Shown here in pieces: positions 3,415 to 23,580 of a stretch of 64,000 nucleotides of DNA (position 1 is its first letter; every line of letters starts with the position of its first letter). A program made the translations under genes and the position numbers. A model generated the notes under the pieces. It was not told the origin of the DNA, did not search any database, and worked only from the letters and a program-made list of their open reading frames with translations. Source of the DNA: Obrimoposthia wandeli (taxonomy: Eukaryota); NCBI GenBank assembly GCA_977020255.1, contig CDROCS010000506.1, positions 2,480,001 through 2,544,000 of the forward strand. Direction: 5' to 3'.

Positions 3415-4208
3415 AAGTTATTACACCAAGTTACATTGTGGCGTTTGCGTCTTAACACTATCCCGAAGCTAGTTGACGGTTCGTTGAATCATTTAACGGG
3501 TATTATGGTAAATTAAGGGTTAATTCATTTATTAAATTGAGAATAATATTTTGCTAAACATCTGGGTAAATGTTTCGACCCAATTGAATGACAAGTACCT
3601 GTTATTCAATTCTTTATATTACCAACCATCGTGTTAACCCAGATGAACTGTTTCTTCTTGACACTTTTTGACCCATCTCCTGTGACGATGCTGAAATGCT
3701 CAGATTCTGCTTGTCATCCCGATCTTTAATTACCGCATGATTTTTTGCTTCATTCTCTAGACTGAATTATATGAAACCCCAACTTGACGTTTAAGTGAGA
3801 ATGTGGATTTGCCTGTTTTAGATTTAGTTGTTAATAAAACGCTTAAAACAAAATGTTAAAGATAACTTTGAATGTTCAAATATCGTATTAGCGGTTACTG
3901 ATGTCTGGTGACGACAGAGATTACATTGATATACCTTTCTTGATTTCAATGAATAATAACGATTAGAAAAACATGGAGGACAGACAAAAACTATCAGGCC
4001 ATTTCTAATTGAAAAGAGCCTCAATACATTGTTTTTCTGAACCGTCACCTCTGAATATTGCGAGTAAACCATACCCATGTTGATGCTGAATTTGATTATT
4101 GATCATAACCGTCGTCCTCACAAAGTATCACTATAAATGTAGCTTAATAGTGAGTTGAATGTAGCTTAATAGTGAATTAAAAGTGGCTGAATTAAGTGGG
4201 TAATCATT
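3415..4208 (-). pseudogene. IS1595-family transposase relic (zinc ribbon and C-terminus retained, central core largely missing)
   Basis: FVCPPC..RYYSLKSRKVYQCNLCRHQTSVTANTIFEHSKL zinc ribbon (3824-4078); downstream fragments LKRQVGVSYNS and WVNTMVGNIKN..GTCHSIGSKHLPR with stops and frameshifts; ends approximate. Confidence 0.75.
4136..4175. repeat. Tandem 18-bp repeat (period 22)
   Basis: AATGTAGCTTAATAGTGA at 4136-4153 and 4158-4175. Confidence 0.85.
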
Positions 4209-4452: not shown

Positions 4453-5022
4453 ATGAAAAAAAGAAAGGATACTCTAATCATGCTCCTTGTGGGCTTTGCT
4501 CTGTTATTTACGTCAACAAGCCAAGCCACAGAACTGAATTGGTATGCAAAAGGCTTGCAGGCTGAATATGCAGGCGATTATCAACGTGCGATAGATAATT
4601 ATATCAAATCAGCCAATTCGGGTGTCAAAGATGCCAACTTCGCGGTTGCTCGCTCATACCAAGCGATTGGTAATGAGCAAGCCAGTTTAGAGTGGTTTAT
4701 TAAAGCCGCTAATGTAGGCGATAAATTTGCACAGTACGAGACAGCTTTGATTTATCTAAAAGGTAATTCAGCTACAGAAGCTGATCAGCTAATAGCGTTA
4801 AATTGGTTGACCTTAGCGGCAAAAGCTAAGCATGGTGAGGCTGCTTATGAATTGTTTAAAATTGATCCAAATGTACGCTGGTTAAAAATCGCTGCAGAGC
4901 AAGGCGTTCAAGTCGCAATGTCAAGCTTATTCGATGCCTATACGCAAGGCCTATACGGAGCAGAGGTTAATTTGTTCCAAGCTCAACATTGGGCTAAGCG
5001 CGCTATTGATTCTCAGGAATAA
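4453..5022 (+). CDS. Secreted/periplasmic Sel1-like repeat (SLR) protein
   Basis: 189 aa; signal peptide ending SQA; repeated A..WF.KAA..G...AQY..A..YL.G motifs. Confidence 0.85.
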   Translation: MKKRKDTLIMLLVGFALLFTSTSQATELNWYAKGLQAEYAGDYQRAIDNYIKSANSGVKDANFAVARSYQAIGNEQASLEWFIKAANVGDKFAQYETALIYLKGNSATEADQLIALNWLTLAAKAKHGEAAYELFKIDPNVRWLKIAAEQGVQVAMSSLFDAYTQGLYGAEVNLFQAQHWAKRAIDSQE

Positions 5023-5033
5023 GGAATAAGTAA

Positions 5034-8000
5034 ATGAAATATATTTTTAAATGGCTGACTGTTCCCCTATTTGCCTTATTTTCGACCTATATACACGCGG
5101 CACCCAGCGTCTCAGTGGTATTTGTCCTAGATGAATCTGGCAGTGTTTCTCGCTCAAACTTTGATCTTCAAACTAAAGGTTTTCAAGAAGCGCTCACAGC
5201 ATTACCACTTGATGGATCAGTAGAAGTTTCTGTTATTGGTTTTTCTTCGTCTAACAGCACCATCGTCGATAAAATGGAACTGACATCGGCAACACTCACT
5301 AGCGTAAGTGATGCGCTCGCTAATAATTATAAAAATAGTGGTGGGACCAATATGAGTGGCGCCATTAACAGCAGTGCTGGGATTTTACTGGGTAGCACGG
5401 CACCATCTAAAGTTATTTGTTTAGCAACTGATGGATCGCCAAATAGCCAATCATCCGCTACATTAGCGGCAAATAATGCCAAGAATAGTGGTATTTCTTT
5501 GACTCCAGTAGGAATTGGACTAGGTACATCTGGCAAAAGTTTCTTGGATAGTATTGCCTCTATTCCACCCGTACCCAATCCAGGGGATTTCACAGACTTT
5601 GCAACAGTTGTTACCAATGTTTGTGTCGGTGTTACAAAAAGTGCGCTTAATATAGCATTAACTCCAACTAGCGTTGATTTTGGGGTATCTCAAGGCAGTG
5701 GACAGTCTCAATGTAGTCAACAAGAGTCAATCAGCTTAACCAACCGCAGCAATCAAATCGTGAGTATCACTAACATATCCATTCAAGGGGAAGATGCTGA
5801 AAACTTTCAACTACTAACCGCCTTGGGTCAGTCTTTTGATAGTCTAACTTTTCCAAATAACTTACCTGGGTTATATAACACGGCACTTGAGGTTAAATTA
5901 TCTCCTTTATCAACGCCTGCTGATAGTACCTATGATGCAAGCATTGTTGTTTCAGCCATTGATGAAAATGGTATCAGTGGTGATTTTTCTGCTACATTAC
6001 AAGCCCCAGTCGGTAATGCCTGTTTAACTTTCTCAGCTTGGGATGCACAACAAGTTATCGGAACAATCGATGAAAATAGTGTTCCTTATAATAAATCAGG
6101 TAATATTCTTGCTGATGACAAAGGGAAATTTACTGAGAGTCAATTAGAAAATGGTAAGCGTGTTGGCTTGGTGACTGATGGTAATGCTCGTTTATTACTC
6201 ACATCCACTACGTCAGTTATCAAAGGTAAGATGCGCTTTGAAATTATCACACCTTCAAGAACTGAAGCAAGACTCGGCACATTAGATTATTCAAGTAACA
6301 ATGATGGCAGTACTTTTGTTGATGTTGATCTCTCAGTTAATACTAATGGCGAAGGTCAAGCAAGTGCCATTTTACGCGCTGGAGAGTACTTTCTTGGTAC
6401 AGCAGGTGAAAAAGAAGTTGCCTTTTCCATACGTAGTTGTTTACTGGATGATCAAAATGTCTGTACTTCAGTTGAGCAACAAAAAACGTTTAGAGAACGA
6501 CGAGCTCCTGTGGTGTTGATCCATGGATTATGGGCGAGCCCTGACTCTTTTAATGGTGAAGAAAAAGGTGTTTTTAAAAGTGCAGTGCCTGGCTTATTTG
6601 ATGAGCTTTCCAAAAATGGGTTAAGAGAAGTTGGTACGATTAAATACAATAATTATCAAGGTCCAACCGCCACCATGCCTGCTAGTTCAAAATTACTATC
6701 AGGGGAGATAGATACACTTTGCGATAAACTGATCTACAATGATCAGTTCGCCTGTACCAGAGCTGATCTAGTCGGACATAGTATGGGTGGTCTAGTTGCC
6801 AGAAAATTTATCGAAGATAACAACCACTATCGCGACACCCGAAATTTCCAACAAGGTGCGGTAAGAAGACTTATTACGCTTGGCACTCCACATCTAGGCA
6901 GTGGTTTCGCGAGCCTATTAATGGGGCGAGACGATTCAGGTATTCGATCTTGTATCCGTGATGAGCGACTGTTGGTTAAAGATGAAGGCTTTACAGTCCC
7001 ACTAGTTAATGAACAAGGTGATGTCCAAGCCACTATCATTAGAGAGTTGCAACCTAGCGAAGAGATGACTGAAGTTGAAAAAGAGGCAGGTTATGAAGTG
7101 CTAGCGAATGGCTATTCTTTCGTAAATGTAGCTACAAGCGGTTTAGCTAAGATAGGAAACCAAGTAGTTACAGATAAAAATGGCGCCATTAATTACCTTG
7201 CTCTCGGTAGTGCTGGATTAAACTACTTAAACAATAATCAGCAAGCGGTTCCTACCGTAGGTTTGGTGGGTAACATTGGAAACAACCTTTTATTTAATGG
7301 CTTTAGAGGCAGGCACATTGAAAAGGTTCTGAGATATACAGGGTGTGTTGCCGATGATTTATTCTTAGGAGAAGATTCAGATGGTGTAGTTGCCTTATCT
7401 AGCGCTAGAGGTAGGTTAGGTAGTAGTTATACCCAAGAATTCCCCTCTGTACAACACACTGGTATGGGGACAAATCAAGGGGTAATAGATTGGGTGCTAG
7501 ATATTATTGACATGCCACTTACCAAGTACTCCAAAATTGTCATGAACGCAAAATCGAGAGAGCTAAAATTTATGATCAGTAAGAACAATCTACCGTCATT
7601 AAAAAATAAGCCAGTGAAGAAGACACTTCTTTCAAATACTCTACTTGACAAAGTAGGGGAATTTGTAAGGAGCTCGGCTCTTGCAATGATAGGTATCAAT
7701 ACTGCTTACGCGCAAGATATCGATAGCTTACAGATATCTGTGAGTAACTTAACTCCCGTTGGAGGTGAAGAAATAACTATTTCACTTGATTCATCGAGTG
7801 ATGGTTTAGAATCAATTGCCCTGCAGGGGGATGGTATTGATCTTATCGATGAAACAGCGCCATATAGTTGGACAACAACAGTCCCTAATAATGCTGTAGG
7901 GAAATTCCAGTATTCTGTTGCAGCCATCTCTGAACTAAATATATTAACCTCCAATACTGTTGAAATCACCGTTGCTATTGATGCCTCAGAAATTCGATCA

Positions 8001-8996
8001 ATTCTATTCGACCCAGCAGATCGGATCGTATTGCATCCTGGTCGTAGCCAACAATTAAAATTAGTTGGTCAAGGTAACGATGGATTCAAACGCGACTTAA
8101 CTGCAAGTGCGCTTGGTACAACATATTCAGAAAATATTGTATCAGGCTTAACCGTTACAGTAGGTGATAGCGCTGTTTTTAGCATCGACTCAGAAGGAAA
8201 TGTGTATGCTCAAGAGCCTGGAGAAGCTGAAATCGTAGCTAGTTTTGGTACACTAAGTGCTATTCGTAGAATATTGGTGGTTTCGGCCGAACCTGACGAC
8301 GCAGATGGAGATGGACTAACAGACTCCCAAGAGCAATTATTAGGAACTGATAGGTTTAATCCGGATAGTGACGATAACGGAATTCAGGATGATATTGAAG
8401 TTGGCAGTAACCCTGATGCAGCTTTGGATTCTGATGGCGATGGCATCATAGATGCGTTAGAAAGCGATACTATGGTGGTTGAAGACGAAAATGGATTACA
8501 TATATCCATTAAAACATCGGCAGGCAAAATTACCAGTGCATATAGTCAGCCATTAGCTGATTTACCAGCTCGCTCTGGGGAGCTTGACCTGATCACCATG
8601 CCACTAGGAGCACTGGGGTTTTCCGTTGAAGAGCTAAATGATGGACAAGCTATCGACGTTTCCCTGACGTTTGAAAATATACCAGCAGGCATCGATAGTT
8701 ACTTAAAATATGGTGCACAATTACCACAAGGAGATCAAGCAAACTGGTATGAATTTACTGATTTTGATCTAGAAGGTAATACAATTACTCTTCATTTAGT
8801 GGATAATGCATCTGGTGATTCTAATCCGATATCAGGTGTAATCAGTGATCCTGGTGGCCCTGGTGACAAGCCTAATCCAACACCTGTGCCAACACCTAAT
8901 GTAGAAAAAGATAGTGGTGGTAGTGTGGGTGTATGGGGATTGGTATTCTTAATGTTGGTGGGAATGAGGAAGTTTAAAGTTAAGAAGCAAGCCTAA
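5034..8996 (+). CDS. 1320-aa multidomain surface protein: signal peptide, VWA, Ig-like, alpha/beta hydrolase (lipase-like), Ig-like, Ca-binding DxDGDG repeats, choice-of-anchor-U-like domain, GlyGly-CTERM
   Basis: VFVLDESGSV MIDAS and LATDGSPN; VLIHGLW, GHSMGG nucleophile elbow, TLGTPHLGS, SDGVV, QHTGM; DADGDGLTD and DSDGDGIIDA; C-terminal SGGSVGVWGLVFLMLVGMRKFKVKK. Confidence 0.85.
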   Translation: MKYIFKWLTVPLFALFSTYIHAAPSVSVVFVLDESGSVSRSNFDLQTKGFQEALTALPLDGSVEVSVIGFSSSNSTIVDKMELTSATLTSVSDALANNYKNSGGTNMSGAINSSAGILLGSTAPSKVICLATDGSPNSQSSATLAANNAKNSGISLTPVGIGLGTSGKSFLDSIASIPPVPNPGDFTDFATVVTNVCVGVTKSALNIALTPTSVDFGVSQGSGQSQCSQQESISLTNRSNQIVSITNISIQGEDAENFQLLTALGQSFDSLTFPNNLPGLYNTALEVKLSPLSTPADSTYDASIVVSAIDENGISGDFSATLQAPVGNACLTFSAWDAQQVIGTIDENSVPYNKSGNILADDKGKFTESQLENGKRVGLVTDGNARLLLTSTTSVIKGKMRFEIITPSRTEARLGTLDYSSNNDGSTFVDVDLSVNTNGEGQASAILRAGEYFLGTAGEKEVAFSIRSCLLDDQNVCTSVEQQKTFRERRAPVVLIHGLWASPDSFNGEEKGVFKSAVPGLFDELSKNGLREVGTIKYNNYQGPTATMPASSKLLSGEIDTLCDKLIYNDQFACTRADLVGHSMGGLVARKFIEDNNHYRDTRNFQQGAVRRLITLGTPHLGSGFASLLMGRDDSGIRSCIRDERLLVKDEGFTVPLVNEQGDVQATIIRELQPSEEMTEVEKEAGYEVLANGYSFVNVATSGLAKIGNQVVTDKNGAINYLALGSAGLNYLNNNQQAVPTVGLVGNIGNNLLFNGFRGRHIEKVLRYTGCVADDLFLGEDSDGVVALSSARGRLGSSYTQEFPSVQHTGMGTNQGVIDWVLDIIDMPLTKYSKIVMNAKSRELKFMISKNNLPSLKNKPVKKTLLSNTLLDKVGEFVRSSALAMIGINTAYAQDIDSLQISVSNLTPVGGEEITISLDSSSDGLESIALQGDGIDLIDETAPYSWTTTVPNNAVGKFQYSVAAISELNILTSNTVEITVAIDASEIRSILFDPADRIVLHPGRSQQLKLVGQGNDGFKRDLTASALGTTYSENIVSGLTVTVGDSAVFSIDSEGNVYAQEPGEAEIVASFGTLSAIRRILVVSAEPDDADGDGLTDSQEQLLGTDRFNPDSDDNGIQDDIEVGSNPDAALDSDGDGIIDALESDTMVVEDENGLHISIKTSAGKITSAYSQPLADLPARSGELDLITMPLGALGFSVEELNDGQAIDVSLTFENIPAGIDSYLKYGAQLPQGDQANWYEFTDFDLEGNTITLHLVDNASGDSNPISGVISDPGGPGDKPNPTPVPTPNVEKDSGGSVGVWGLVFLMLVGMRKFKVKKQA

Positions 8997-9256: not shown

Positions 9257-10785
9257 CTAGCTACGCTTAATATTCCATGGCAGTAACGCGTCAATATCAT
9301 TTGGTTTTTCAGCAATCTGCTGTAAGCAGCTTGCGATATAATCATGCACGATGAGATTATTCGCTTTCGCTGTTTCAACCAAACTATATAAAATGGCACT
9401 CGCGTTCGCACCTGTATTGGTGTACGAGAACAACCAAGCCTTACGCCCTATCACAAAGGGCTTTACTGCCCGTTCTGCGCGATTATTGTCAATGCTCAAT
9501 CGACCATCTTCAAGATAGCGCTGGAATTTTTCAAATTGATTTAAGCTGTAGCTAATCGCTTCGCCAAGTTTGCTTTTGGGTGGGATTTTTTCTTTGTGTT
9601 CGATGAGCCAGTCATATAATATTTTCACAATCGGCTTGGCTTGTAATTGCCGAATAGTAAATTTTTCTTCGACTGACTTTCCTTTAATACGTTTTTCTAT
9701 TCCGTATAACTTACCAATTAAATTTAATGCGACATCCACTTTCCCTGTTTTCTTTTTGCCTTGCACCTTTTTTACATCGATGAATTTACGGCGGATATGC
9801 GCAAGACAGGCAACCAATGTTGCTTGCGTTGATTCATAAGCTTTATATCCATCAACGTGCATGTAACCTTGGTAACCATCAAGAAAATCAATTGCACATT
9901 GGGCTCTACGACTATTATGATAATCGAATAACACTATATTGGTGTTACTGCCTAATGCATCTGTTCCACAGCAATATACCCACATATAGCTTGTCGCTTT
10001 TTCTGCTTTGATTACTTTTAGTGGCGTCTCGTCCGCATGTATCGCTGGCTCTGCGAGCAATGTTGTTTTCAAGCGCATGTATAAAGGTTCAAGCAATGCT
10101 GCACAGCGTAATATTGACGACTCAACTCAATACCGATGTCGATCAACATTGTTTCTTGTCGGTAAAGCGGTAAACCAAATTGATATTTACAGGTAATAAT
10201 TTGGCTTAGCAAACTCGCGGTTGCAATACTTTTGGGGATCGGCGTGGCTGGCATCGGCGCCATTTTGATGTGACTTTCAATGCCATTGTTTTCACAATGT
10301 CGACAGGTATATTTCGGGCGAATAGTTTTGATGACTTTAATATGAGCAGGTACAAACTCAAGGGTTTCGCTGCTGCTCTCGCCCATTTTATGCAACGGAT
10401 TATGGCAACAATCACATGTTTTATCCGTGTCATCAATATCAACGATAACTTCTTTTCGAGGTAGTTCAGGCGGTAGTGGTTTGCGCTTTGGTTTTACTTT
10501 TGGCTCTGTTTTCTCTTCAGTCGTTACGCTTGCTAATAGCTGCTCGTCTTGTTCATCAAGCGTCATTTCAGCTTCATTGAAGACTTCATCAGAACCTGGC
10601 ATCTTTTCTGATTTTTTACCGTATTCGTTAGCCAGTTTTATATTATAACGTTCGAGTAATTCTTGATAGATAGCGTCTTTTTCATTAAGTTCTTCATCTT
10701 TTTTCATGATAACAGCCTGCAACTCAAGCAGCATTTTCTTGAGTTGTTCAGGGTCGTCTGGTAATACGTTCGCATCAAGTTTCAT
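9257..10785 (-). pseudogene. tnpC: IS66 TnpC transposase split by frameshift(s) near 10070-10220
   Basis: N-part 10069-10785 (leucine zipper, CDCC/CRHC zinc finger) and C-part 9257-10096 (HADETPL, CLAHIRRKF, IDNNRAERAVK, DALLPWN). Confidence 0.85.
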
Positions 10786-10895
10786 CTGCTCATTTTAGCA
10801 AACTTATCAAAATGATACCGCACTTGACGGTAATGAGTATAAGGGGAGAGCGTCAACGATCGTTGACTACTCAGATATGACAAATTCCGATCGCG

Positions 10896-11243
10896 TTAGA
10901 TCATCGATTGATACTGTAATTCTTGGTGACCAAGCACATCAAATCCTGATAGCAGCCACTTAAATTGTTCATCCGTTAATTCAAACTCATTGCAATCGAT
11001 GTTACTCGGCCATTTGAACTTTTGCTTTTCGAGGCGTTTATACCAAAGCGCAAAACCAGTCTTATCCCAATATAGTATTTTTAGTTTGTCTTTGGCTTTA
11101 TTACAAAACACAAACAACTCACCCGTGTAAGCGTCACGATTAAGCTCATCTTCAACAATGGCTGCTAACCCGTTTATTGATTTACGAAAATCGACGAAAT
11201 CACGATGTAAAAAAACGGCGGATGGTTCAATAAAGGATTGCAT
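10896..11243 (-). CDS. tnpB: IS66 accessory protein TnpB
   Basis: VDFRKSINGL, LFVFCNK..DKLKILYWD..GF.LWYKRLE motifs. Confidence 0.92.
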   Translation of the reverse strand: MQSFIEPSAVFLHRDFVDFRKSINGLAAIVEDELNRDAYTGELFVFCNKAKDKLKILYWDKTGFALWYKRLEKQKFKWPSNIDCNEFELTDEQFKWLLSGFDVLGHQELQYQSMI

Positions 11244-11897: not shown

Positions 11898-12942
11898 TTA
11901 CGATTCCGTCCCTGTAAGTTGCAAACTAGCCACATCGGTAATAATCATCTGTAATTTTTCTTTGATTTTATGCGATAGGATATATGCAGAGTCTTCAGAG
12001 GAAGTAACTAAACCTTTTCTTTCCATTACCATTAAAGTACCACGCACTTTTTCAATAGGGTACTGTGTTGAAGCGACTTTTAATGTCTGTGGAGAGTACG
12101 GTGAATTTGATAGTAATTGAATTAATATTAAATATATAAATTCGATTTCCGTTTTATGGTAGGCAAAATTAAAATCGAGTTGGAATTCTTTCGCTAACCA
12201 CATCTGTGTATTATGTTTACCCGTATTTGATGAAATATGTTTAAGAACCTGTCTTGAAACAAACTGCGGAGGGTTAGTTGAATTTCCAATTTCATCATTA
12301 ATGACAAACTCGCCATGACTTGACGTTGGGGTGTTATTTACCGCCTCACCTTTCAATTCCTTACCATATCCATATCCACGATTATTTTTAATATACGGGT
12401 TTTCTTGTGTTAGATCATGAGTCTCTTTACTAATTATTTCAATGTTTCTTAACCCTTCAATTTCATCTTTAAGATTACGTATTTCGCTCTTATGCTCAGT
12501 CTTAACGCCCTTAATAGCGATTCGCATTTTTTCTTTATGTTCTTGCGTCATTATTGAATAGTTATTTACATACTTTGTTCTTAGACTTTCTAGGGTCGTA
12601 TTTAGATAACTCCATATACCAGTCGATAGATTTGAAATCAAAGGAGCTAGGAATAAATAAATAAAGAATAGAGGCTATTAGTGGGAACCAAAGCAAACTG
12701 TTATAGTTCGTTATTAATGCGCCATTAGCGTCATCTAATATTTGATATATCCCTTTTAAATATTCAATTTTCTTTGCTGTGCTTTCATCACTGAAGAAAA
12801 AATAAAAAACAGATTCCCAGTTAAAAATTAACCATGAAAAAAGGAACGCACCACCTAGGGGGTTATTAAATCTATAATTTGTATTTTGGAGTAATGATTG
12901 AAGTGGGGTCACCAATTTATCAATATAATCTTTCATGCGCAT
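11898..12942 (-). CDS. Hypothetical membrane protein (2 TM, coiled coil, C-terminal wHTH-like), split into two ORFs by one frameshift near 12640-12655
   Basis: Overlapping ORFs 12562-12942 and 11898-12641 join into one continuous protein (..SILYLFI / PLISNLSTGIWSYL..). Confidence 0.6.
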
Positions 12943-13640: not shown

Positions 13641-13729
13641 TTTATTACAGGTATAAAAAAACACCTGATGTTGCCACCGCGTTTTAAAATTTGCGCCCCA
13701 GACCTGAACTGCACCTGCCGATTATGAGT
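13641..13729. repeat. Right direct repeat of island (attL-like)
   Basis: Imperfect copy of 2207-2305; identical core ACCTGCCGATTATGAGT. Confidence 0.8.
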
Positions 13730-13760
13730 CGGATGCCTAAACCAACTGAGCTATGCGCCT
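13690..13760 (-). tRNA. ileX: tRNA-Ile2 (anticodon CAU), sequence degenerate or garbled in this assembly
   Basis: TAGCTCAGTTGGT..GCATCCGACTCATAATCGG; position downstream of rpoD as for E. coli ileX; the left fragment shows G68/G69 (TilS determinants); acceptor and T arms here do not fold properly. Confidence 0.65.
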
Positions 13761-13941
13761 GATTCAAACGTTCTTACGACGCTTTGGGCCGGAGAAAGTA
13801 TATAAGTATAGTTTCTGTGTGTTCAGGTCATATTCAATAACTTAGACAAGCAACCAACTAACTGTTCAATTATTCACGAAGATACTGCGTAAGCCCCACT
13901 AGTGCCAGATAGCACATTATTATTCATTTTATTGTAGGCAT

Positions 13942-14003: not shown

Positions 14004-15832
14004 TTACTCGTCTAAGAAGCTACGTAGCTGTTCGCTGCGGCTAGGATGACGTAATTTACGTAATGCCTTCGCTTCAATCTGACGGATACGCTCACGCGTT
14101 ACATCGAACTGTTTACCCACTTCTTCAAGTGTGTGATCCGTATTCATATCGATACCAAAACGCATACGTAGCACTTTCGCTTCACGGGCTGTTAGGCCTG
14201 CTAGAACGTCGTCTGTCGCGCCTTTGCTGCCATCTTTGTCGCAGCGTCAACTGGTAAAGAAAGCGTGGTATCTTCAATGAAATCGCCTAAAGTGTGAGAA
14301 TCTTCATCGTCACCGATAGGCGTTTCCATCGAGATAGGTTCTTTAGCAATCTTCAATACTTTACGAATACGATCTTCTGGCATCATCATGCGCTCAGCCA
14401 ATTCTTCTGGCGTTGCTTCACGGCCCATCTCTTGCAGCATTTGACGCGAAATACGATTCAGTTTATTGATTGTTTCAATCATATGCACTGGAATACGGAT
14501 TGTACGTGCTTGGTCAGCAATAGAACGCGTGATTGCCTGACGGATCCACCAAGTAGCGTAAGTTGAGAATTTGTAACCACGACGGTATTCAAACTTATCT
14601 ACGGCTTTCATCAGACCGATGTTACCTTCCTGGATTAAATCTAGGAATTGTAGACCACGGTTGGTGTATTTTTTTGCAATCGAAATTACCAGACGTAAAT
14701 TCGCTTCAACCATTTCTTTTTTCGCACGGCGGGCTTTCGCTTCACCAATACTCATACGACGGTTGATGTTTTTGATCTGAGAAATAGTCAGACCAGTAGT
14801 GTTCTCTACTAATTTCAATTTGTTGATGCAACGGCGTACGTCAAAATCGATACGTTGTAATGCTTGCGCATAAGGTGCCGCTGATTGTTGTGCTTTTTGG
14901 AACCATGCGCCATCAGTTTCGTGACCCGCAAATGCTTCTACGAAAGCTGCTTTTGGCATTTTACATTGTTCAACACACATCTTGATTACAAGACGTTCTT
15001 GCACACGTACGTGATCCATCATGTCACGCATGTTATTTACAATGCGATCAAATTGTTTTGGGATCAGACGGAAAGTACGGAATACTTCACCTAGCTTTTC
15101 AACATGTAGACGTGTTTTAGGATGTTCTAAACCGTCTTCTTTAATGCCTTTTAGTAATGCTGCATGCAGTTTACGTAACTCGGTGAACTTTTCAGCTGCT
15201 TCTTCAGGATCAGGCCCTTTATTGCCTTCTTCCTCTTCTTCGTCATCATCGCTATCAGACTCAAGCTCTTTGCTTGGTAATTCTGAGCCGATATGTGTTG
15301 CTGTTGGTGCTACATCGTCCGCATTCGGATCGATGAAACCAGTGATGATGTCGCTTAAGCGAGCTTCTTCAGCAAGGAACTTGTCGTATTGTGCTAATAA
15401 CGAGTTAATTGCTTCTGGGTATTCTGCTACGGCAGTTTGTACCGCGTAGATACCTTCTTCAATACGTTTTGCAATTTTGATCTCGCCTTCACGAGTCAAC
15501 AGCTCAACAGTACCCATCTCACGCATGTACATGCGCACTGGATCGGTAGTACGACCAATTTCAGATTCTACAGAAGCAAGCGCGGCTGCTGCGGCTTCTG
15601 CGGCATCATCATCAGGTGCAGTGGTATTTTCTGCCATCAATAGGTCATCTGCATCAGGTGCTGTTTCTAGCACTTGAATACCCATGTCATTGATCATTTG
15701 AATAATATCTTCAACCTGATCTGAGTCCACAATATCTTGTGGTAAATGATCATTTACTTCGGCATAGGTCAGGTAACCTTGTTCTTTACCTTTAGCTACA
15801 AGAAGTTTTAATTGTGATTGAGGGGATTCCAT
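14004..15832 (-). CDS. rpoD: RNA polymerase sigma-70 factor RpoD (apparent 1-nt frameshift near 14230, likely sequence error)
   Basis: Regions 1.1-3 in ORF 14201-15832; region 4 ([24 protein letters not shown]...RSFLDE*) continues in another frame to the stop at 14004. Confidence 0.95.
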
Positions 15833-19768: not shown

Positions 19769-20260
19769 ATGAAAGTAGCAGCATTGAGAATGACCGTCGC
19801 AGCAGGGATTATGGCTTTATTATCAGCATGTTCTAGTCAAACTAACATTGAAAGTGATCTCGACATTAGTGGCGCTCCGGACTGGGTGAATATCGGCACG
19901 CAAACGGTCGATGATGATTCTGGTCGTTTATTACACGGTGTGGGCATGTCAAATGACATTGCTGACCAATCCTTACAAAAATCTGTCGCTGATAACCGTG
20001 CTCGTGCTGAAGTTGCGCGTATCCTAGCAACATCGGTTGATGCTATGCAGGCGGATTATACTGCCGCAGCCAATGGCGAAGTCAGTGCCAATGTAGAACG
20101 TGAAATTAAAGCGAAAACTAAATTAGCACTCAATGGCGTTAAAATTATTGGTCGTTGGAAAAATCCAGAGAATGGCGATATTTATGCCTTTGCTGAATTA
20201 GACCTGTCTGATCTGGATGCGGCAATTAAGCGTGCGACAGCGTTAGCACCACAGCAGTAA
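19769..20260 (+). CDS. LPP20-like lipoprotein
   Basis: Lipobox LSAC; GAPDWV, ADNRARAEVA, L.GV.IIGRW.NP..G.IYA pattern. Confidence 0.7.
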   Translation: MKVAALRMTVAAGIMALLSACSSQTNIESDLDISGAPDWVNIGTQTVDDDSGRLLHGVGMSNDIADQSLQKSVADNRARAEVARILATSVDAMQADYTAAANGEVSANVEREIKAKTKLALNGVKIIGRWKNPENGDIYAFAELDLSDLDAAIKRATALAPQQ

Positions 20261-20314
20261 TGGTATTGATTAAGTGTTTGTTAATTTTATTAAATTTAAG
20301 AAAGGAAATGATCA

Positions 20315-20917
20315 ATGAATAAGTTGTTAAAATTAGTATTGGGTTCGGTTTTAGTATCGACGTTAGCGACCGGTTGTAGCACCTCTGTTGAGCGTGTTGA
20401 TGCGGGTCAAACTGTCGATTTAAGTGGTGCGTGGAACGACACTGACTCACAAATGGTGGCACAAGAAATGATCAGTGATGTGTTAGCACGTCCTTGGTAT
20501 AACAAGTTCACTGCGAAAACGGGTCAAGCACCTTCTGTGATCGTCGGTACAGTGCGTAACTTAAGCCATGAACACATCAATACCAAAACCTTTGTTAACG
20601 AAATGGAACGTGAGCTAATTAATAGCGGCCAAGTTGAGTTTGTCGCATCAAGTGATGAGCGTACTGAGATCCGTGAAGAGCGTATTGACCAAGATTTGAA
20701 TTCAACTGAATCAACACGTAATGCAGCGGGTCAAGAACAAGGCGCTGACTTTATTCTGAAAGGTCAGATCAATACCATTATTGATACTGCAGATAGCGAG
20801 CAAGTACGTTATTACCAAGTTGATTTAAGCTTAATCAGCCTAGCGGATAACCGCAAGGTATGGGTAGGTCAGAAAAAACTGAAGAAATTAGTGTCTAACG
20901 GTAAACTACGTTATTAA
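20315..20917 (+). CDS. LpoB-like (penicillin-binding protein activator family) lipoprotein
   Basis: Lipobox ATGC; VRNLSHEHINT, GADFILKGQI, YYQVDLSLISL..NRKVWVGQK. Confidence 0.75.
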   Translation: MNKLLKLVLGSVLVSTLATGCSTSVERVDAGQTVDLSGAWNDTDSQMVAQEMISDVLARPWYNKFTAKTGQAPSVIVGTVRNLSHEHINTKTFVNEMERELINSGQVEFVASSDERTEIREERIDQDLNSTESTRNAAGQEQGADFILKGQINTIIDTADSEQVRYYQVDLSLISLADNRKVWVGQKKLKKLVSNGKLRY

Positions 20918-20923
20918 TAGGTC

Positions 20924-22507
20924 GTGATGAAAGCTGTATTAACATTTTTACGTTCGCGGCGTTATCTCGCTGTTATTGGGTTTAGTTTATTGCAAGGTTG
21001 CTCAATGCAGCAGCATCAGCTAAACGATTTGGCACAAACATTAGATAACGGTAATGCGAGTCAAGTATTGTCCGAAGTTGCGCAACGGGAATACCCAGAG
21101 CGCGATCTCGCCCAATATAAACTGACACTCGGTTTGTTACGTGCTGTGAATGGTGATTTTGCTGGTGGCATTAATGAATTGCAGGCCGCTAAAACGGCAA
21201 TAAACCAACTGCAAGCGTTAAGTATTAGCGAAAACATTGGGGCGGTAACGGTCAATGAAACCTTGCGTAGTTATACCAGTACAGCCAGTGAACGGATGTT
21301 ATTACAGCAATTATTGATCTTATCTTACTTGATGGAAGATGATCTTGATGGTGCGCGGGTTGAAGTCTTGCAAATGCAAGAATTAGCCAAAAGCTTACCG
21401 GACAATGGCCTGTCAGGGCTAGTATCAAGTAGTTATTACTTGGGTGGTTTGGTGTATGAACTCGGTGATGAAACCGATAGTGCCATGATCAGTTATCGTC
21501 AAGCCTACCAAATAATGAAAACCAGTAAAGTCGCGATACCGTTGGTATTACAAGACAGCTTATTACTGGCGTCAAAGCAGTTGGGGCTCAGATCTGAACA
21601 TGAAAAATATGTACAAGAATTTGACCATGACGTAAAGCCGTTAGATCGAAATAAAAGCCAGCTGGTTTTAGTGTATTGGGGCGGCGTTGTGTCGGCCAAG
21701 CAACAGCAATACATGAGCGTATATGCTCCAAGTTTGGGTTATAACATTTCCTTGGCGCTACCTTACTATGCCAAGCATTATGTCAAACCGGTACCTTGGC
21801 GTTTTACCGTGTTAGGAAAAACGGCTGAAACCGAAATATTTGATGATGTAAACTTATTGGCGCGTGCCGATCTGGAAGCTGAATCAGCGGCGATTTATGC
21901 TGCCGCTTTAGCACGGGTTATTATCAAGCAAACCGCATTACACGAAGTACAAAAAAAGGACGAGGACGGATTAGCGACCTTGTTATTGAATATTACCAGT
22001 ATGATCAGCGAAATGGCGGATGTACGTAGTTGGAATATGCTACCGGCCAGTATTCAAGTACAACGTCTAACACTGGAACCTGGCACTTATTATTTACAGC
22101 AACCGAGCCTAACTCAAGGCTTTTCTGTTACGGATATCGCGCCGATAATTCCGATATTAACGACGCCTGAGTTAGTCGCGCCAGTATTGGTGAATGCCAC
22201 GGCAAGTATTGCAGATGATATTGCAGAGAGTGCCGCCAAGTCTGATAACGGTTTAAGTTTACCGCCATCGAATACGGCGCTAGCAGATGCTGCTAACAAC
22301 TCAGATACTATCAGCTCCGATATTAGTAACTCAGATACGACTAGCTCAGATACGATTAACTCAGAGTCAGTTGCGATGACCAATTTCGGTAATGTGCCAA
22401 CGGCTGTTACGGTCGGAACGGATCCTTTGTTGTTAACACCAGGGAAAACCGTTTTACTGTTTTATTCAAGTGCGGCTAAAAAAGCATACACCCCCTTATC
22501 ACCTTAG
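20924..22507 (+). CDS. TPR-like lipoprotein (COG3014-like) with a low-complexity C-terminal insertion
   Basis: Lipobox LQGC; ARVEV, AMISYRQAY, ADVRSWNMLP motifs; SDT-rich repeats near the C-terminus. Confidence 0.65.
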   Translation: MMKAVLTFLRSRRYLAVIGFSLLQGCSMQQHQLNDLAQTLDNGNASQVLSEVAQREYPERDLAQYKLTLGLLRAVNGDFAGGINELQAAKTAINQLQALSISENIGAVTVNETLRSYTSTASERMLLQQLLILSYLMEDDLDGARVEVLQMQELAKSLPDNGLSGLVSSSYYLGGLVYELGDETDSAMISYRQAYQIMKTSKVAIPLVLQDSLLLASKQLGLRSEHEKYVQEFDHDVKPLDRNKSQLVLVYWGGVVSAKQQQYMSVYAPSLGYNISLALPYYAKHYVKPVPWRFTVLGKTAETEIFDDVNLLARADLEAESAAIYAAALARVIIKQTALHEVQKKDEDGLATLLLNITSMISEMADVRSWNMLPASIQVQRLTLEPGTYYLQQPSLTQGFSVTDIAPIIPILTTPELVAPVLVNATASIADDIAESAAKSDNGLSLPPSNTALADAANNSDTISSDISNSDTTSSDTINSESVAMTNFGNVPTAVTVGTDPLLLTPGKTVLLFYSSAAKKAYTPLSP

Positions 22508-22545
22508 TTATTCATGAGCGGCCGCCCACCGATTAATGTGGGCGT

Positions 22546-23580
22546 GTGCTTAAGTCACGGTTTGTTACAGGACACGACAACATGATCAATAAATTATTTT
22601 CTACCAGTTTAATTTCTGCCGCTGCCATCTTAATGAGTGCTTGTAGCAGTACGCCTGAGCGTCCCACTTGGTTAGATGGCGCAGATGTTAATTATCCTCA
22701 AAACGTCTATTTAACCGCGTCTGGTCAAGCTAAAACCAATAGTGTTGCCGATAACCGCGCATTAGCTAATTTAGCCAAGATATTCGAAGTGTCGATTGCC
22801 GATGAAAGCATTGATTTTAGCGAAGCCAATATCAGTCAAAGTAATGTTAGTGGTACCACGGTCCGTCAGGTGGATAATAAGCAAACCTTATCGCGCTTTG
22901 TAAATACCCAAGCCCAGCAAGTATTGCAAGGCACCAGTATTGTCGAACGCTGGCAAGATCCGGTGACGGGTCAACAGTCTAGTCTGGCTGTGATGAAGAA
23001 AGCGCCAGCTGCTGCATTGTTCATGCAGTCGATACGTGCCGCAGATGAGCAAACAAGCGCTGCAGTGAAGTATGCCGAGCAACAAGCACCAAACCCACTG
23101 ATTGCCCTTAGTGCATTAGAAAGTGCCCGTGAGCGTCAGATCACACGCTTAAATGATAATAATAATCTGCGCGTAGTGACTGGCAACGACATCAATGTGG
23201 AATACTCGGTAGAAACCTTAACGCAGATGATTAAAAGTCGCTTAGCGGCATTATCGTTTGCAACGGCAGCAACGGATGAACAAGCGTTATTATCGTTGCA
23301 AAGTGGCGCCGCTGAAGTCGGCGTACAGCTTAAAGATGATAGCCAATACAAATTAGTACTCACCTTGGATAAAGGGGCTGTAGAGCAACGTCAGGCGTGG
23401 TATTGGTTACAGGGTAACGTTGTCTTGAATGTGATGGATGGTACCAAGAGTATCGCGAATAAACGCTGGCCCTTTAAGATCTCGGCGCAAAGCGAGCAAT
23501 TATTAGAACAACGACTCGCGGTTAAGCTAAATAAGGCACTGCCGGGTTATGTTTATCAAGTATTAACCCCAAAAATGTAA
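22546..23580 (+). CDS. LPP20-like lipoprotein (probable start 22582)
   Basis: Lipobox MSAC; PTWL, YLTASG, ADNRALANLAKIFEVSI pattern. Confidence 0.7.
   Translation: MLKSRFVTGHDNMINKLFSTSLISAAAILMSACSSTPERPTWLDGADVNYPQNVYLTASGQAKTNSVADNRALANLAKIFEVSIADESIDFSEANISQSNVSGTTVRQVDNKQTLSRFVNTQAQQVLQGTSIVERWQDPVTGQQSSLAVMKKAPAAALFMQSIRAADEQTSAAVKYAEQQAPNPLIALSALESARERQITRLNDNNNLRVVTGNDINVEYSVETLTQMIKSRLAALSFATAATDEQALLSLQSGAAEVGVQLKDDSQYKLVLTLDKGAVEQRQAWYWLQGNVVLNVMDGTKSIANKRWPFKISAQSEQLLEQRLAVKLNKALPGYVYQVLTPKM

Follow-up and report, generated by a model that had tools for sequence, protein, structure and literature searches.

Several described systems resemble, in part, the locus analysed here. [quoted passage not shown] LipA with Lif or LipB (PDB 2ES4, 9G8U) and the "T2SS chaperones" (Harding et al. 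2016, PMC4713064) are cases in which a small accessory gene adjoins that of an exported lipase. [quoted passage not shown] Further points of comparison are the JDVT-CTERM/MrtJ sorting system (Haft, bioRxiv 10.1101/2023.06.07.544157) and the adhesins with a metal ion-dependent adhesion site (MIDAS), such as TRAP, MIC2, PTMP1 and integrin I domains. Here we describe a two-gene operon located at positions 4453–8996 of a 64,000-nucleotide stretch of DNA, referred to below as the window (contig CDROCS010000506.1, positions 2,480,001 to 2,544,000 of the forward strand, of the GenBank assembly GCA_977020255.1, deposited under the name Obrimoposthia wandeli). Gene 1 encodes a Sel1-repeat protein, and gene 2 encodes a predicted modular surface protein with a VWA-lipase head, a stalk and an anchor. 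We read the pair as a horizontally acquired operon for a surface adhesin-lipase and a dedicated periplasmic escort or cap for its VWA-bearing head, and we consider the chances of this reading to be about even.

Like VesB, the product of gene 2 has a Sec signal and a C-terminal Gly/Ser motif followed by a hydrophobic helix and a basic tail; in both cases the bacterium has its own rhombosortase and T2SS genes, and the product would likewise be a hydrolytic enzyme displayed at the surface. However, the cargo in the window is a 1300-aa VWA-lipase-stalk protein, not a protease, it has a dedicated Sel1 partner gene, and its orthologues use JDVT-CTERM, IPTL-CTERM or a separate anchored stalk. With LipA-Lif/LipB, the locus shares a small accessory gene that adjoins, and is co-expressed with, that of a lipase predicted to be exported by Sec and T2SS, and the hydrolase of gene 2 is close to these lipases both by structure and by profile. 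The accessory protein is, in contrast, a Sel1 solenoid unrelated to Lif and CpaB; its signal peptide is probably cleaved, and it appears to track the VWA domain and not the lipase. The PGAP1-like GxSxG hydrolase fold is common to gene 2 and the Tle4–Tli4 pair, and a periplasmic Sel1-repeat protein is common to gene 1 and the PldB pair. Unlike these T6SS pairs, the operon has no T6SS linkage, its enzyme carries Sec and surface-sorting signals, there is no special similarity to Tle4 or Tli5, and no orphan copies of the Sel1 gene were found. The complete DxSxS...T...D metal site is the same as in the MIDAS adhesins, whereas the VWA domain of the window is fused to a lipase and to bacterial sorting modules. 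Full-text literature searches returned no description of the Sel1 and VWA-lipase pair or of this architecture. All parts of the module are known; as far as we found, their combination, a surface-sorted T2SS cargo with a dedicated helper, is undescribed.

Gene 2 (an open reading frame (ORF) at 5034–8996, + strand) encodes 1320 aa. The Sec signal peptide (residues 1–22, nt 5034–5099, +) is followed by the VWA domain (aa 28–182, 5115–5579, +; PF00092, E 5e-16), in which the MIDAS is formed by D33, S35, S37, T105 and D133. Two beta-sandwich spacer domains (aa ~205–482, 5646–6479, +) separate it from an alpha/beta hydrolase of the lipase type (aa 483–835, 6480–7538, +), which is PGAP1/DUF676-like (PF07819, 33.2 bits with a cut-off of 24.3) and is modelled with a pLDDT (predicted local distance difference test) of 90.4. 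The oxyanion residues are H497-G498, and the catalytic set comprises S583 (in GHSMGG), D783 (in SDGVV) and H808 (in QHTG). In the alignment of 28 homologues, all these MIDAS and hydrolase residues are invariant, and eight cysteines are conserved too. The invariance of both sets indicates that both active sites are under selection across the family. The second beta-sandwich always accompanies the hydrolase, including in the relatives without VWA.

The C-terminal part of the protein consists of a linker (aa 836–894, 7539–7715, +), a stalk homologous to the cadherin/Big-type stalk proteins of relatives (aa 895–1083, 7716–8282, +), Asp-rich TSP3-type calcium-binding repeats (aa ~1084–1143, 8283–8462, +), a choice-of-anchor U region (NF041766, aa 1187–1277, 8592–8864, +; 59.1 bits, cut-off 32) and a GlyGly-CTERM sorting signal (TIGR03501, aa 1294–1315, 8913–8978, +; 16.9 bits, cut-off 15.5). 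In a genome-wide scan, the GlyGly-CTERM signal of gene 2 scored 23.9 bits. The preliminary description of this DNA, made from its letters alone, had proposed a two-gene operon with a periplasmic Sel1-repeat protein and a multidomain surface hydrolase. The operon and the nature of gene 1 are borne out, and both ORFs have the coordinates given there. As to gene 2, the Sec signal, the VWA domain with its MIDAS, the Ser-Asp-His set, choice-of-anchor U and GlyGly-CTERM stand, while two of the modules are softer. The TSP3 match (E 0.0044) lies below the Pfam cut-off, but D-rich motifs can be seen in the sequence. For the "Ig-like" stalk, Pfam gave no match in the window protein, and this assignment comes solely from the homology to the stalks of relatives.

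The solved proteins nearest in sequence to the VWA domain have VWAs of the adhesin type: mussel PTMP1, Plasmodium TRAP, Toxoplasma MIC2 and an aerotolerance-related membrane protein of Bacteroides (4jdu). For the hydrolase, the nearest solved proteins by profile are the Burkholderia family I.2 lipases (E ~1e-8), followed by PhaZ7, and Tle4 is absent among the best 60 profile matches. The top Foldseek matches are family I lipases as well. A comparison by VIA-align yielded a plateau of lipases: BlEst2 (Z 21.1), Legionella PlaB (19.1), lipases of Burkholderia, Acinetobacter and Pseudomonas (~18.9), then Tle4 (Z 17.4, rank 24) and LCAT (17.3). The modelled fold says that the enzyme is a lipase, an esterase or a phospholipase; it singles out neither Tle4 nor any one substrate. 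The Tle4-type character suggested initially for the hydrolase does not hold as a specific likeness, its Z of 17.4 with Tle4 being no closer than that with many ordinary lipases (Z 18–21).

Gene 1 (4453–5022, +) encodes a protein of 189 aa with a Pfam Sel1 match of E 3.4e-12. Its signal peptide (residues 1–25, nt 4453–4527, +) ends in a cleavage-type site, SQA/T, leaving a mature protein of ~164 aa, for which the AlphaFold2 model (pLDDT 91.5) is a Sel1 solenoid of 10 helices. All 14 of the 14 Sel1 orthologues have small residues at positions -1 and -3 directly before a conserved NWYA motif, which suggests that their signal peptides are cleaved. The C-terminal Glu (E189) is near-invariant among the orthologues. 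The best fold matches are generic Sel1 proteins with a template modelling (TM) score of 0.7–0.77, HcpC (TM 0.77) as well as LpnE and LceB, whereas PA5087 (Tli5) occupies only rank 38 with TM 0.44; by profile, PA5087 is matched with E 1e-6 and EsiB with E 1e-46. Pfam and NCBIfam detected only Sel1 in gene 1, with no match to Lif (PF03280), and no Lif chain was found among the fold matches. Gene 1 is thus a generic Sel1 protein and is not Tli5-like. The 11-bp gap between the two genes (5023–5033, +) contains an AAGGA ribosome-binding site that overlaps the stop codon. In relatives, the junction between the Sel1 and VWA-lipase genes is often a 4-nt overlap, which indicates translational coupling.

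Of the 13 VWA-bearing loci with visible upstream DNA, 12 have a Sel1 orthologue as the gene directly upstream (175–280 bits with the family hidden Markov model (HMM)), and the flanks of these loci are otherwise unrelated. The initial proposal had taken a usual lack of a Sel1 neighbour among homologues to be evidence against it; what was found is the opposite. Judged from these gene neighbourhoods, the conserved pairing of Sel1 and VWA-lipase is real. No Sel1 gene was found in any of the three relatives lacking an intact VWA domain, namely P0030, a Synergistota protein and the locus L029. The difference between 12/13 and 0/3 corresponds to a Fisher p of ~0.007 by our own arithmetic, which ignores shared ancestry. 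The locus L029 is instructive, as it nests, with 100/96 support, in the Sel1-bearing clade together with the window and three other copies (maximum-likelihood tree of the beta-sandwich and hydrolase core). Its hydrolase is 46% identical to that of the window and retains GHSMGG, SDGVV and the catalytic His, while its VWA domain has shrunk to ~100 residues and has lost the MIDAS Asp. The 5.7 kb upstream, which comprise trpC, osmC and AT-rich DNA, contain neither a Sel1 gene nor a remnant of one.

The pairwise distances point in the same direction. Among 12 pairs, the Sel1 distances correlate with those of the VWA domain (r 0.77, partial 0.71), whereas the correlation with the hydrolase distances is lower (r 0.42) and disappears when VWA is controlled (partial -0.01). 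In terms of sequence, the Sel1 gene appears to track the VWA domain rather than the hydrolase. Each of the four carrier genomes contains exactly one Sel1 orthologue. No orphan copies were found: in the family to which Vibrio sp. MA40-2 belongs, the orthologue occurs in one of 401 genomes, that of the carrier itself. The orthologue census was taken from whole-genome searches; a profile search with the Sel1 alignment in 1.84 billion representatives gave 202,913 matches, mostly long multi-repeat Sel1 proteins, and was unusable for this purpose. A word search with Sel1 recovered five close relatives only, and the distant orthologues were taken from the loci. An apparent split of the VWA and hydrolase parts at one locus (L042) was discounted as evidence on gene order. 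With no signal peptide on its second ORF, this gene has probably been disrupted.

The VWA-lipase family is rare, and its distribution is patchy. Searching 5.8 billion proteins by word index produced 39 matches to gene 2, of which ~30 have the VWA and hydrolase architecture. The carriers among 185,579 species genomes are two Thiotrichaceae metagenome-assembled genomes (MAGs), Candidatus Thiomargarita nelsonii, Vibrio sp. MA40-2, a gammaproteobacterial MAG and a Chlorobium MAG. The family proteins bear only the NCBI names "choice-of-anchor U domain-containing protein" or "VWA domain-containing protein". In Candidatus Thiomargarita nelsonii (L030:6805-8936), ~2.1 kb are inserted between the second beta-sandwich and the hydrolase, and the match to the Sel1 gene contains a TGA; the insert may represent a mobile element, an intron or a sign of a pseudogene.

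Among the 28 orthologues, the C-terminal signal is JDVT-CTERM in ten, IPTL-CTERM in three and GlyGly-CTERM in three. In at least one of the JDVT copies (L017, from a Thiotrichaceae MAG), a gene encoding an Rce1-like intramembrane sorting protease lies directly downstream. Such a protease beside JDVT-CTERM clients was described by Haft; a term search of that preprint found no mention of Sel1 or VWA. The window copy differs from the JDVT-CTERM copies in having swapped to GlyGly-CTERM and in having no adjacent sorting protease. There are also short forms of 850–880 aa that end just past the catalytic His. In these, the stalk is encoded by a separate gene that follows, and it carries both a signal peptide and an anchor (GlyGly- or JDVT-type) of its own. 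Residues ~869–894 of gene 2, within the linker, match the signal peptide of the separate stalk protein, the alignment (E 2e-79) beginning at residue 4 of that protein. This segment represents a fossil signal peptide left by the fusion of head and stalk genes. The sorting signal or the arrangement of stalk and anchor varies among relatives, while the Sel1-head unit is constant.

The machinery for surface sorting is encoded on the same contig as the window. Rhombosortase (TIGR03902, 162.7 bits, cut-off 84) is found at C506:202771-203223 (C506 denotes this contig). GspD, the secretin of T2SS (549.8 bits with a cut-off of 351), is encoded ~38 kb upstream of the window, at C506:2442020-2443780. With both genes on the contig, the machinery for VesB-type display is available here, and the rhombosortase/T2SS route to the surface, which had been proposed for gene 2 at the outset, is plausible on the basis of this gene content.

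The reading we favour can be outlined as follows. The product of gene 2 would be exported by Sec and retained in the inner membrane by the GlyGly-CTERM helix. By analogy with VesB, rhombosortase presumably cleaves it and modifies it with lipid, after which T2SS would transfer it to the cell surface. There, it would be tethered by its C-terminus, with the stalk of Ig-like domains, calcium repeats and choice-of-anchor U extending the distal head. The head combines a MIDAS-type VWA adhesion domain and a lipase-type Ser-Asp-His hydrolase; its metal site would attach it to a target, where the enzyme would hydrolyse ester lipids. The order of a C-terminal anchor, then a stalk and a distal enzyme with a MIDAS suggests the topology of an adhesin that brings an enzyme to its bound target. 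Gene 1 would provide a soluble periplasmic solenoid, made in a fixed ratio to the head owing to translational coupling. While the VWA-bearing N-terminal head passes through the periplasm, the product of gene 1 most likely binds to it, keeping the head soluble, non-adhesive or inactive until export. It would be a substrate-specific secretion chaperone or inhibitor rather than an immunity protein against attack by neighbours. We favour the escort or cap because the Sel1 protein appears to be soluble, periplasmic and translationally coupled, no orphans were found, and it follows the VWA-bearing head.

A bolder version of this reading can be formulated, which is somewhat improbable and is offered tentatively. 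According to it, the Sel1 protein is a new kind of substrate-specific periplasmic "safety cap" that docks on the metal-site face of the VWA domain, perhaps through its C-terminal Glu, and silences the head until T2SS/sortase-like export, co-evolving with VWA and not with the enzyme. In that case, marine and sulfur bacteria would share a mobile, plug-and-play unit used at the surface as a weapon or for feeding, whose stalk and anchor are interchangeable (either fused or separate, with GlyGly-, JDVT- or IPTL-CTERM).

Several observations weigh against the escort or cap. One VWA-bearing protein, P0023 (L049:1040-3350, in a Chlorobium-type MAG), is preceded by an oxidoreductase gene and not by a Sel1 gene. 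This protein of 2160 aa has a 770-aa extension before VWA, which is partly helical and HEAT-like. A fused Sel1 domain in this extension was considered and rejected, as the Sel1 HMM does not match it; since P0023 has no Sel1 neighbour, the extension might replace the Sel1 partner. The combined loss of Sel1 and VWA is known from one lineage, L029, and its contig ends inside the gene. The beta-sandwich that lies between VWA and the hydrolase shows an intermediate correlation with the Sel1 distances (r 0.65), and the Sel1 gene adjoins the VWA-coding end, so that physical linkage could yield the same pattern; the distance correlation therefore gives weak support. The C-terminal Glu is missing in at least one Sel1 orthologue (L048). 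Finally, the nearest solved lipases include foldase-dependent ones, and Sel1 proteins have a proven role in immunity to the PldB phospholipase (PMC13736854).

This last point leads to the pair of effector and immunity protein proposed in the preliminary description, in which a membrane-damaging lipase is directed against competitors or hosts, and the periplasmic Sel1 protein blocks its active site and protects the producer and its sisters, as Tli proteins do against Tle and Pld effectors. Consistent with this, the Sel1 protein is predicted to be periplasmic, is encoded first and has its gene in tight coupling with that of the hydrolase, the hydrolase is clearly related in structure to Tle4, and the module is found on mobile islands beside toxin-antitoxin genes and insertion sequences. 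However, gene 2, with its Sec and surface-sorting signals, does not belong to a T6SS context, and no vgrG, hcp, PAAR or other T6SS families were present among the called genes of the 13 related loci or within 10 kb in the window, which counts against immunity. PA5087 resembles the Sel1 protein less than generic Sel1 proteins do, the hydrolase shows no preference for Tle4 among its matches, neither the four carrier genomes nor the survey of 401 genomes contained orphan immunity-like copies, and L029 keeps an intact hydrolase without a Sel1 gene. With a generic Sel1 fold, Tle4 at rank 24, no orphans found and a Sel1 gene that follows VWA, nothing specifically supports this interpretation, and we consider it unlikely. 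The role of a chaperone in transit, also raised in the preliminary description, fits better.

Such a chaperone could alternatively act on the lipase domain, as a steric foldase that folds it in the periplasm before T2SS export, with a function like that of Lif/LipB and a different fold. The closest solved sequences and folds do include the foldase-dependent lipases of Burkholderia, Pseudomonas and Acinetobacter (E ~1e-8, Z 18–19), and dedicated chaperones adjoining T2SS substrates are an established class, with lipB located upstream of lipA in Acinetobacter (PMC4713064). Nevertheless, gene 1 has no similarity to Lif, and the signal peptide is apparently cleavable in 14 of 14 orthologues, whereas a membrane anchor is typical of Lif and CpaB. 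The hydrolase-bearing relatives without VWA, including L029 of the same clade, lack the Sel1 gene, and tight translational coupling suggests a 1:1 partner, not a recycled catalyst. A foldase appears quite unlikely. It can also be supposed that the Sel1 protein leaves the cell together with the head and remains attached to it outside, serving as an adaptor to the target or, in the split forms, as the link between head and stalk. Sel1 and tetratricopeptide repeat (TPR) proteins are commonly adaptors, and the short-form head has no anchor while its stalk and anchor are secreted separately, so something must join them. Yet the Sel1 gene is equally conserved in the fused forms, where bridging is needless, and export of the Sel1 protein would have to be assumed, which makes an extracellular subunit very unlikely. 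Of all these explanations, the escort or cap for the VWA-bearing head remains the one we prefer.

The DNA of the window belongs to a marine Moritella bacterium, with DnaG being 95% identical to that of Moritella sp. F3. The source assembly is a 1.35-Gb mixture of 6912 contigs, and the contig that contains the window is longer than 2.5 Mb. The genes of Moritella sp. F3 follow each other as tsaD, rpsU, dnaG, rpoD, tRNA-Met(CAU) and an RluA-like gene. In the window, ~11.4 kb lie between two partial copies of tRNA-Met(CAU), and this segment is missing in F3 between the rpoD-tRNA part and the RluA-like gene; this confirms the genomic island that had been proposed for the locus and shows that it is tRNA-linked. 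The island end distal to rpoD (2204–2305, - strand) is a displaced 3' half of the tRNA with its terminator, a clean copy with 96% identity to Moritella sp. F3. The proximal end (13641–13765, -), adjoining rpoD, is a degenerate full-length copy of the same tRNA. Both share an identical 17-bp core beginning in the anticodon loop. ARAGORN and Rfam gave no match in the window, and the tRNA remnants were recognised by eye and by comparison with F3. The copy on the rpoD side is mutated in the acceptor, D and T arms, and neither copy is intact according to ARAGORN. Either tRNA-Met(CAU) at this site is dead, or the assembly is wrong here.

Besides the operon, the island contains AT-rich non-coding DNA, two unmatched ORFs, the remnant of an IS1595 transposase and an IS66 element whose transposase is split. 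The IS66-family element (9257–11243, -) has an intact TnpB (10896–11243), and its transposase is split into overlapping ORFs (9257–10096 and 10069–10785). A fragment of an IS66 transposase also occurs directly upstream of the Sel1 gene in one module copy of Vibrio sp. 1069 (L021). The IS1595-type transposase remnant (3824–4078, -), of which only the zinc-ribbon part is present, lies in the AT-rich non-coding stretch upstream of the operon. No integrase is recognisable beside the tRNA; at the rpoD-proximal end, where one would be expected, two overlapping ORFs of 247 and 126 aa (11898–12942, -) remain unmatched in Pfam at E 0.05. By its appearance, the island is old and decayed. The closest relative of gene 2 anywhere, according to the word-index protein search, is only 69% identical, which fits an accessory rather than a core gene.

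The neighbourhood of the island shows several further features. The rpoD gene (14020–15832, -) has a frameshift near 14210: its ORF of 543 aa stops past region 3, while region 4 is read in a different frame, down to ~14020. In Moritella sp. F3, rpoD is intact and encodes 608 aa. As rpoD is essential, the frameshift is most likely an indel error of the assembly, and other frameshifts here, for example in the IS66 transposase, may be artefacts too. The displaced tRNA half and the RluA-like gene are separated by a gene for a sulphur-transport membrane protein (PF04143; 1201–2142, +). Moritella sp. F3 lacks this gene at the site, which makes it a second insertion or deletion difference just outside the island. 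A cluster at 19769–23580 (+), which is conserved in Moritella sp. F3, comprises genes for an LPP20 lipoprotein, an LpoB-like protein, an unmatched protein of 527 aa and a further LPP20-like protein. In L017, the Sel1-lipase module is likewise flanked by LPP20 genes; a link between the two was considered and judged coincidental, as the window cluster is part of the core genome common with F3. The scan of the window for promoters and terminators gave no more sites than expected by chance, and none of the window proteins was present in the collection searched by exact-sequence cluster look-up.

Surface-tethered T2SS cargo and C-terminal sorting signals are an active field, in which few clients have known functions or helpers. 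The module described here is a compact, conserved and mobile case, in which one head occurs with three sorting signals and a fused or separate stalk, accompanied by the same small partner in 12 of 13 loci. The lipase may be of interest for work on cold-active marine enzymes. Should the partner inhibit the lipase, Sel1-type immunity would be extended beyond T6SS. If it is a cap or chaperone directed to the VWA domain, it would add a class of secretion helpers distinct from the membrane-anchored Lif and CpaB, and if the cap is true, the module would offer a tractable system for studying how adhesive or lytic cargo stays harmless in the periplasm.

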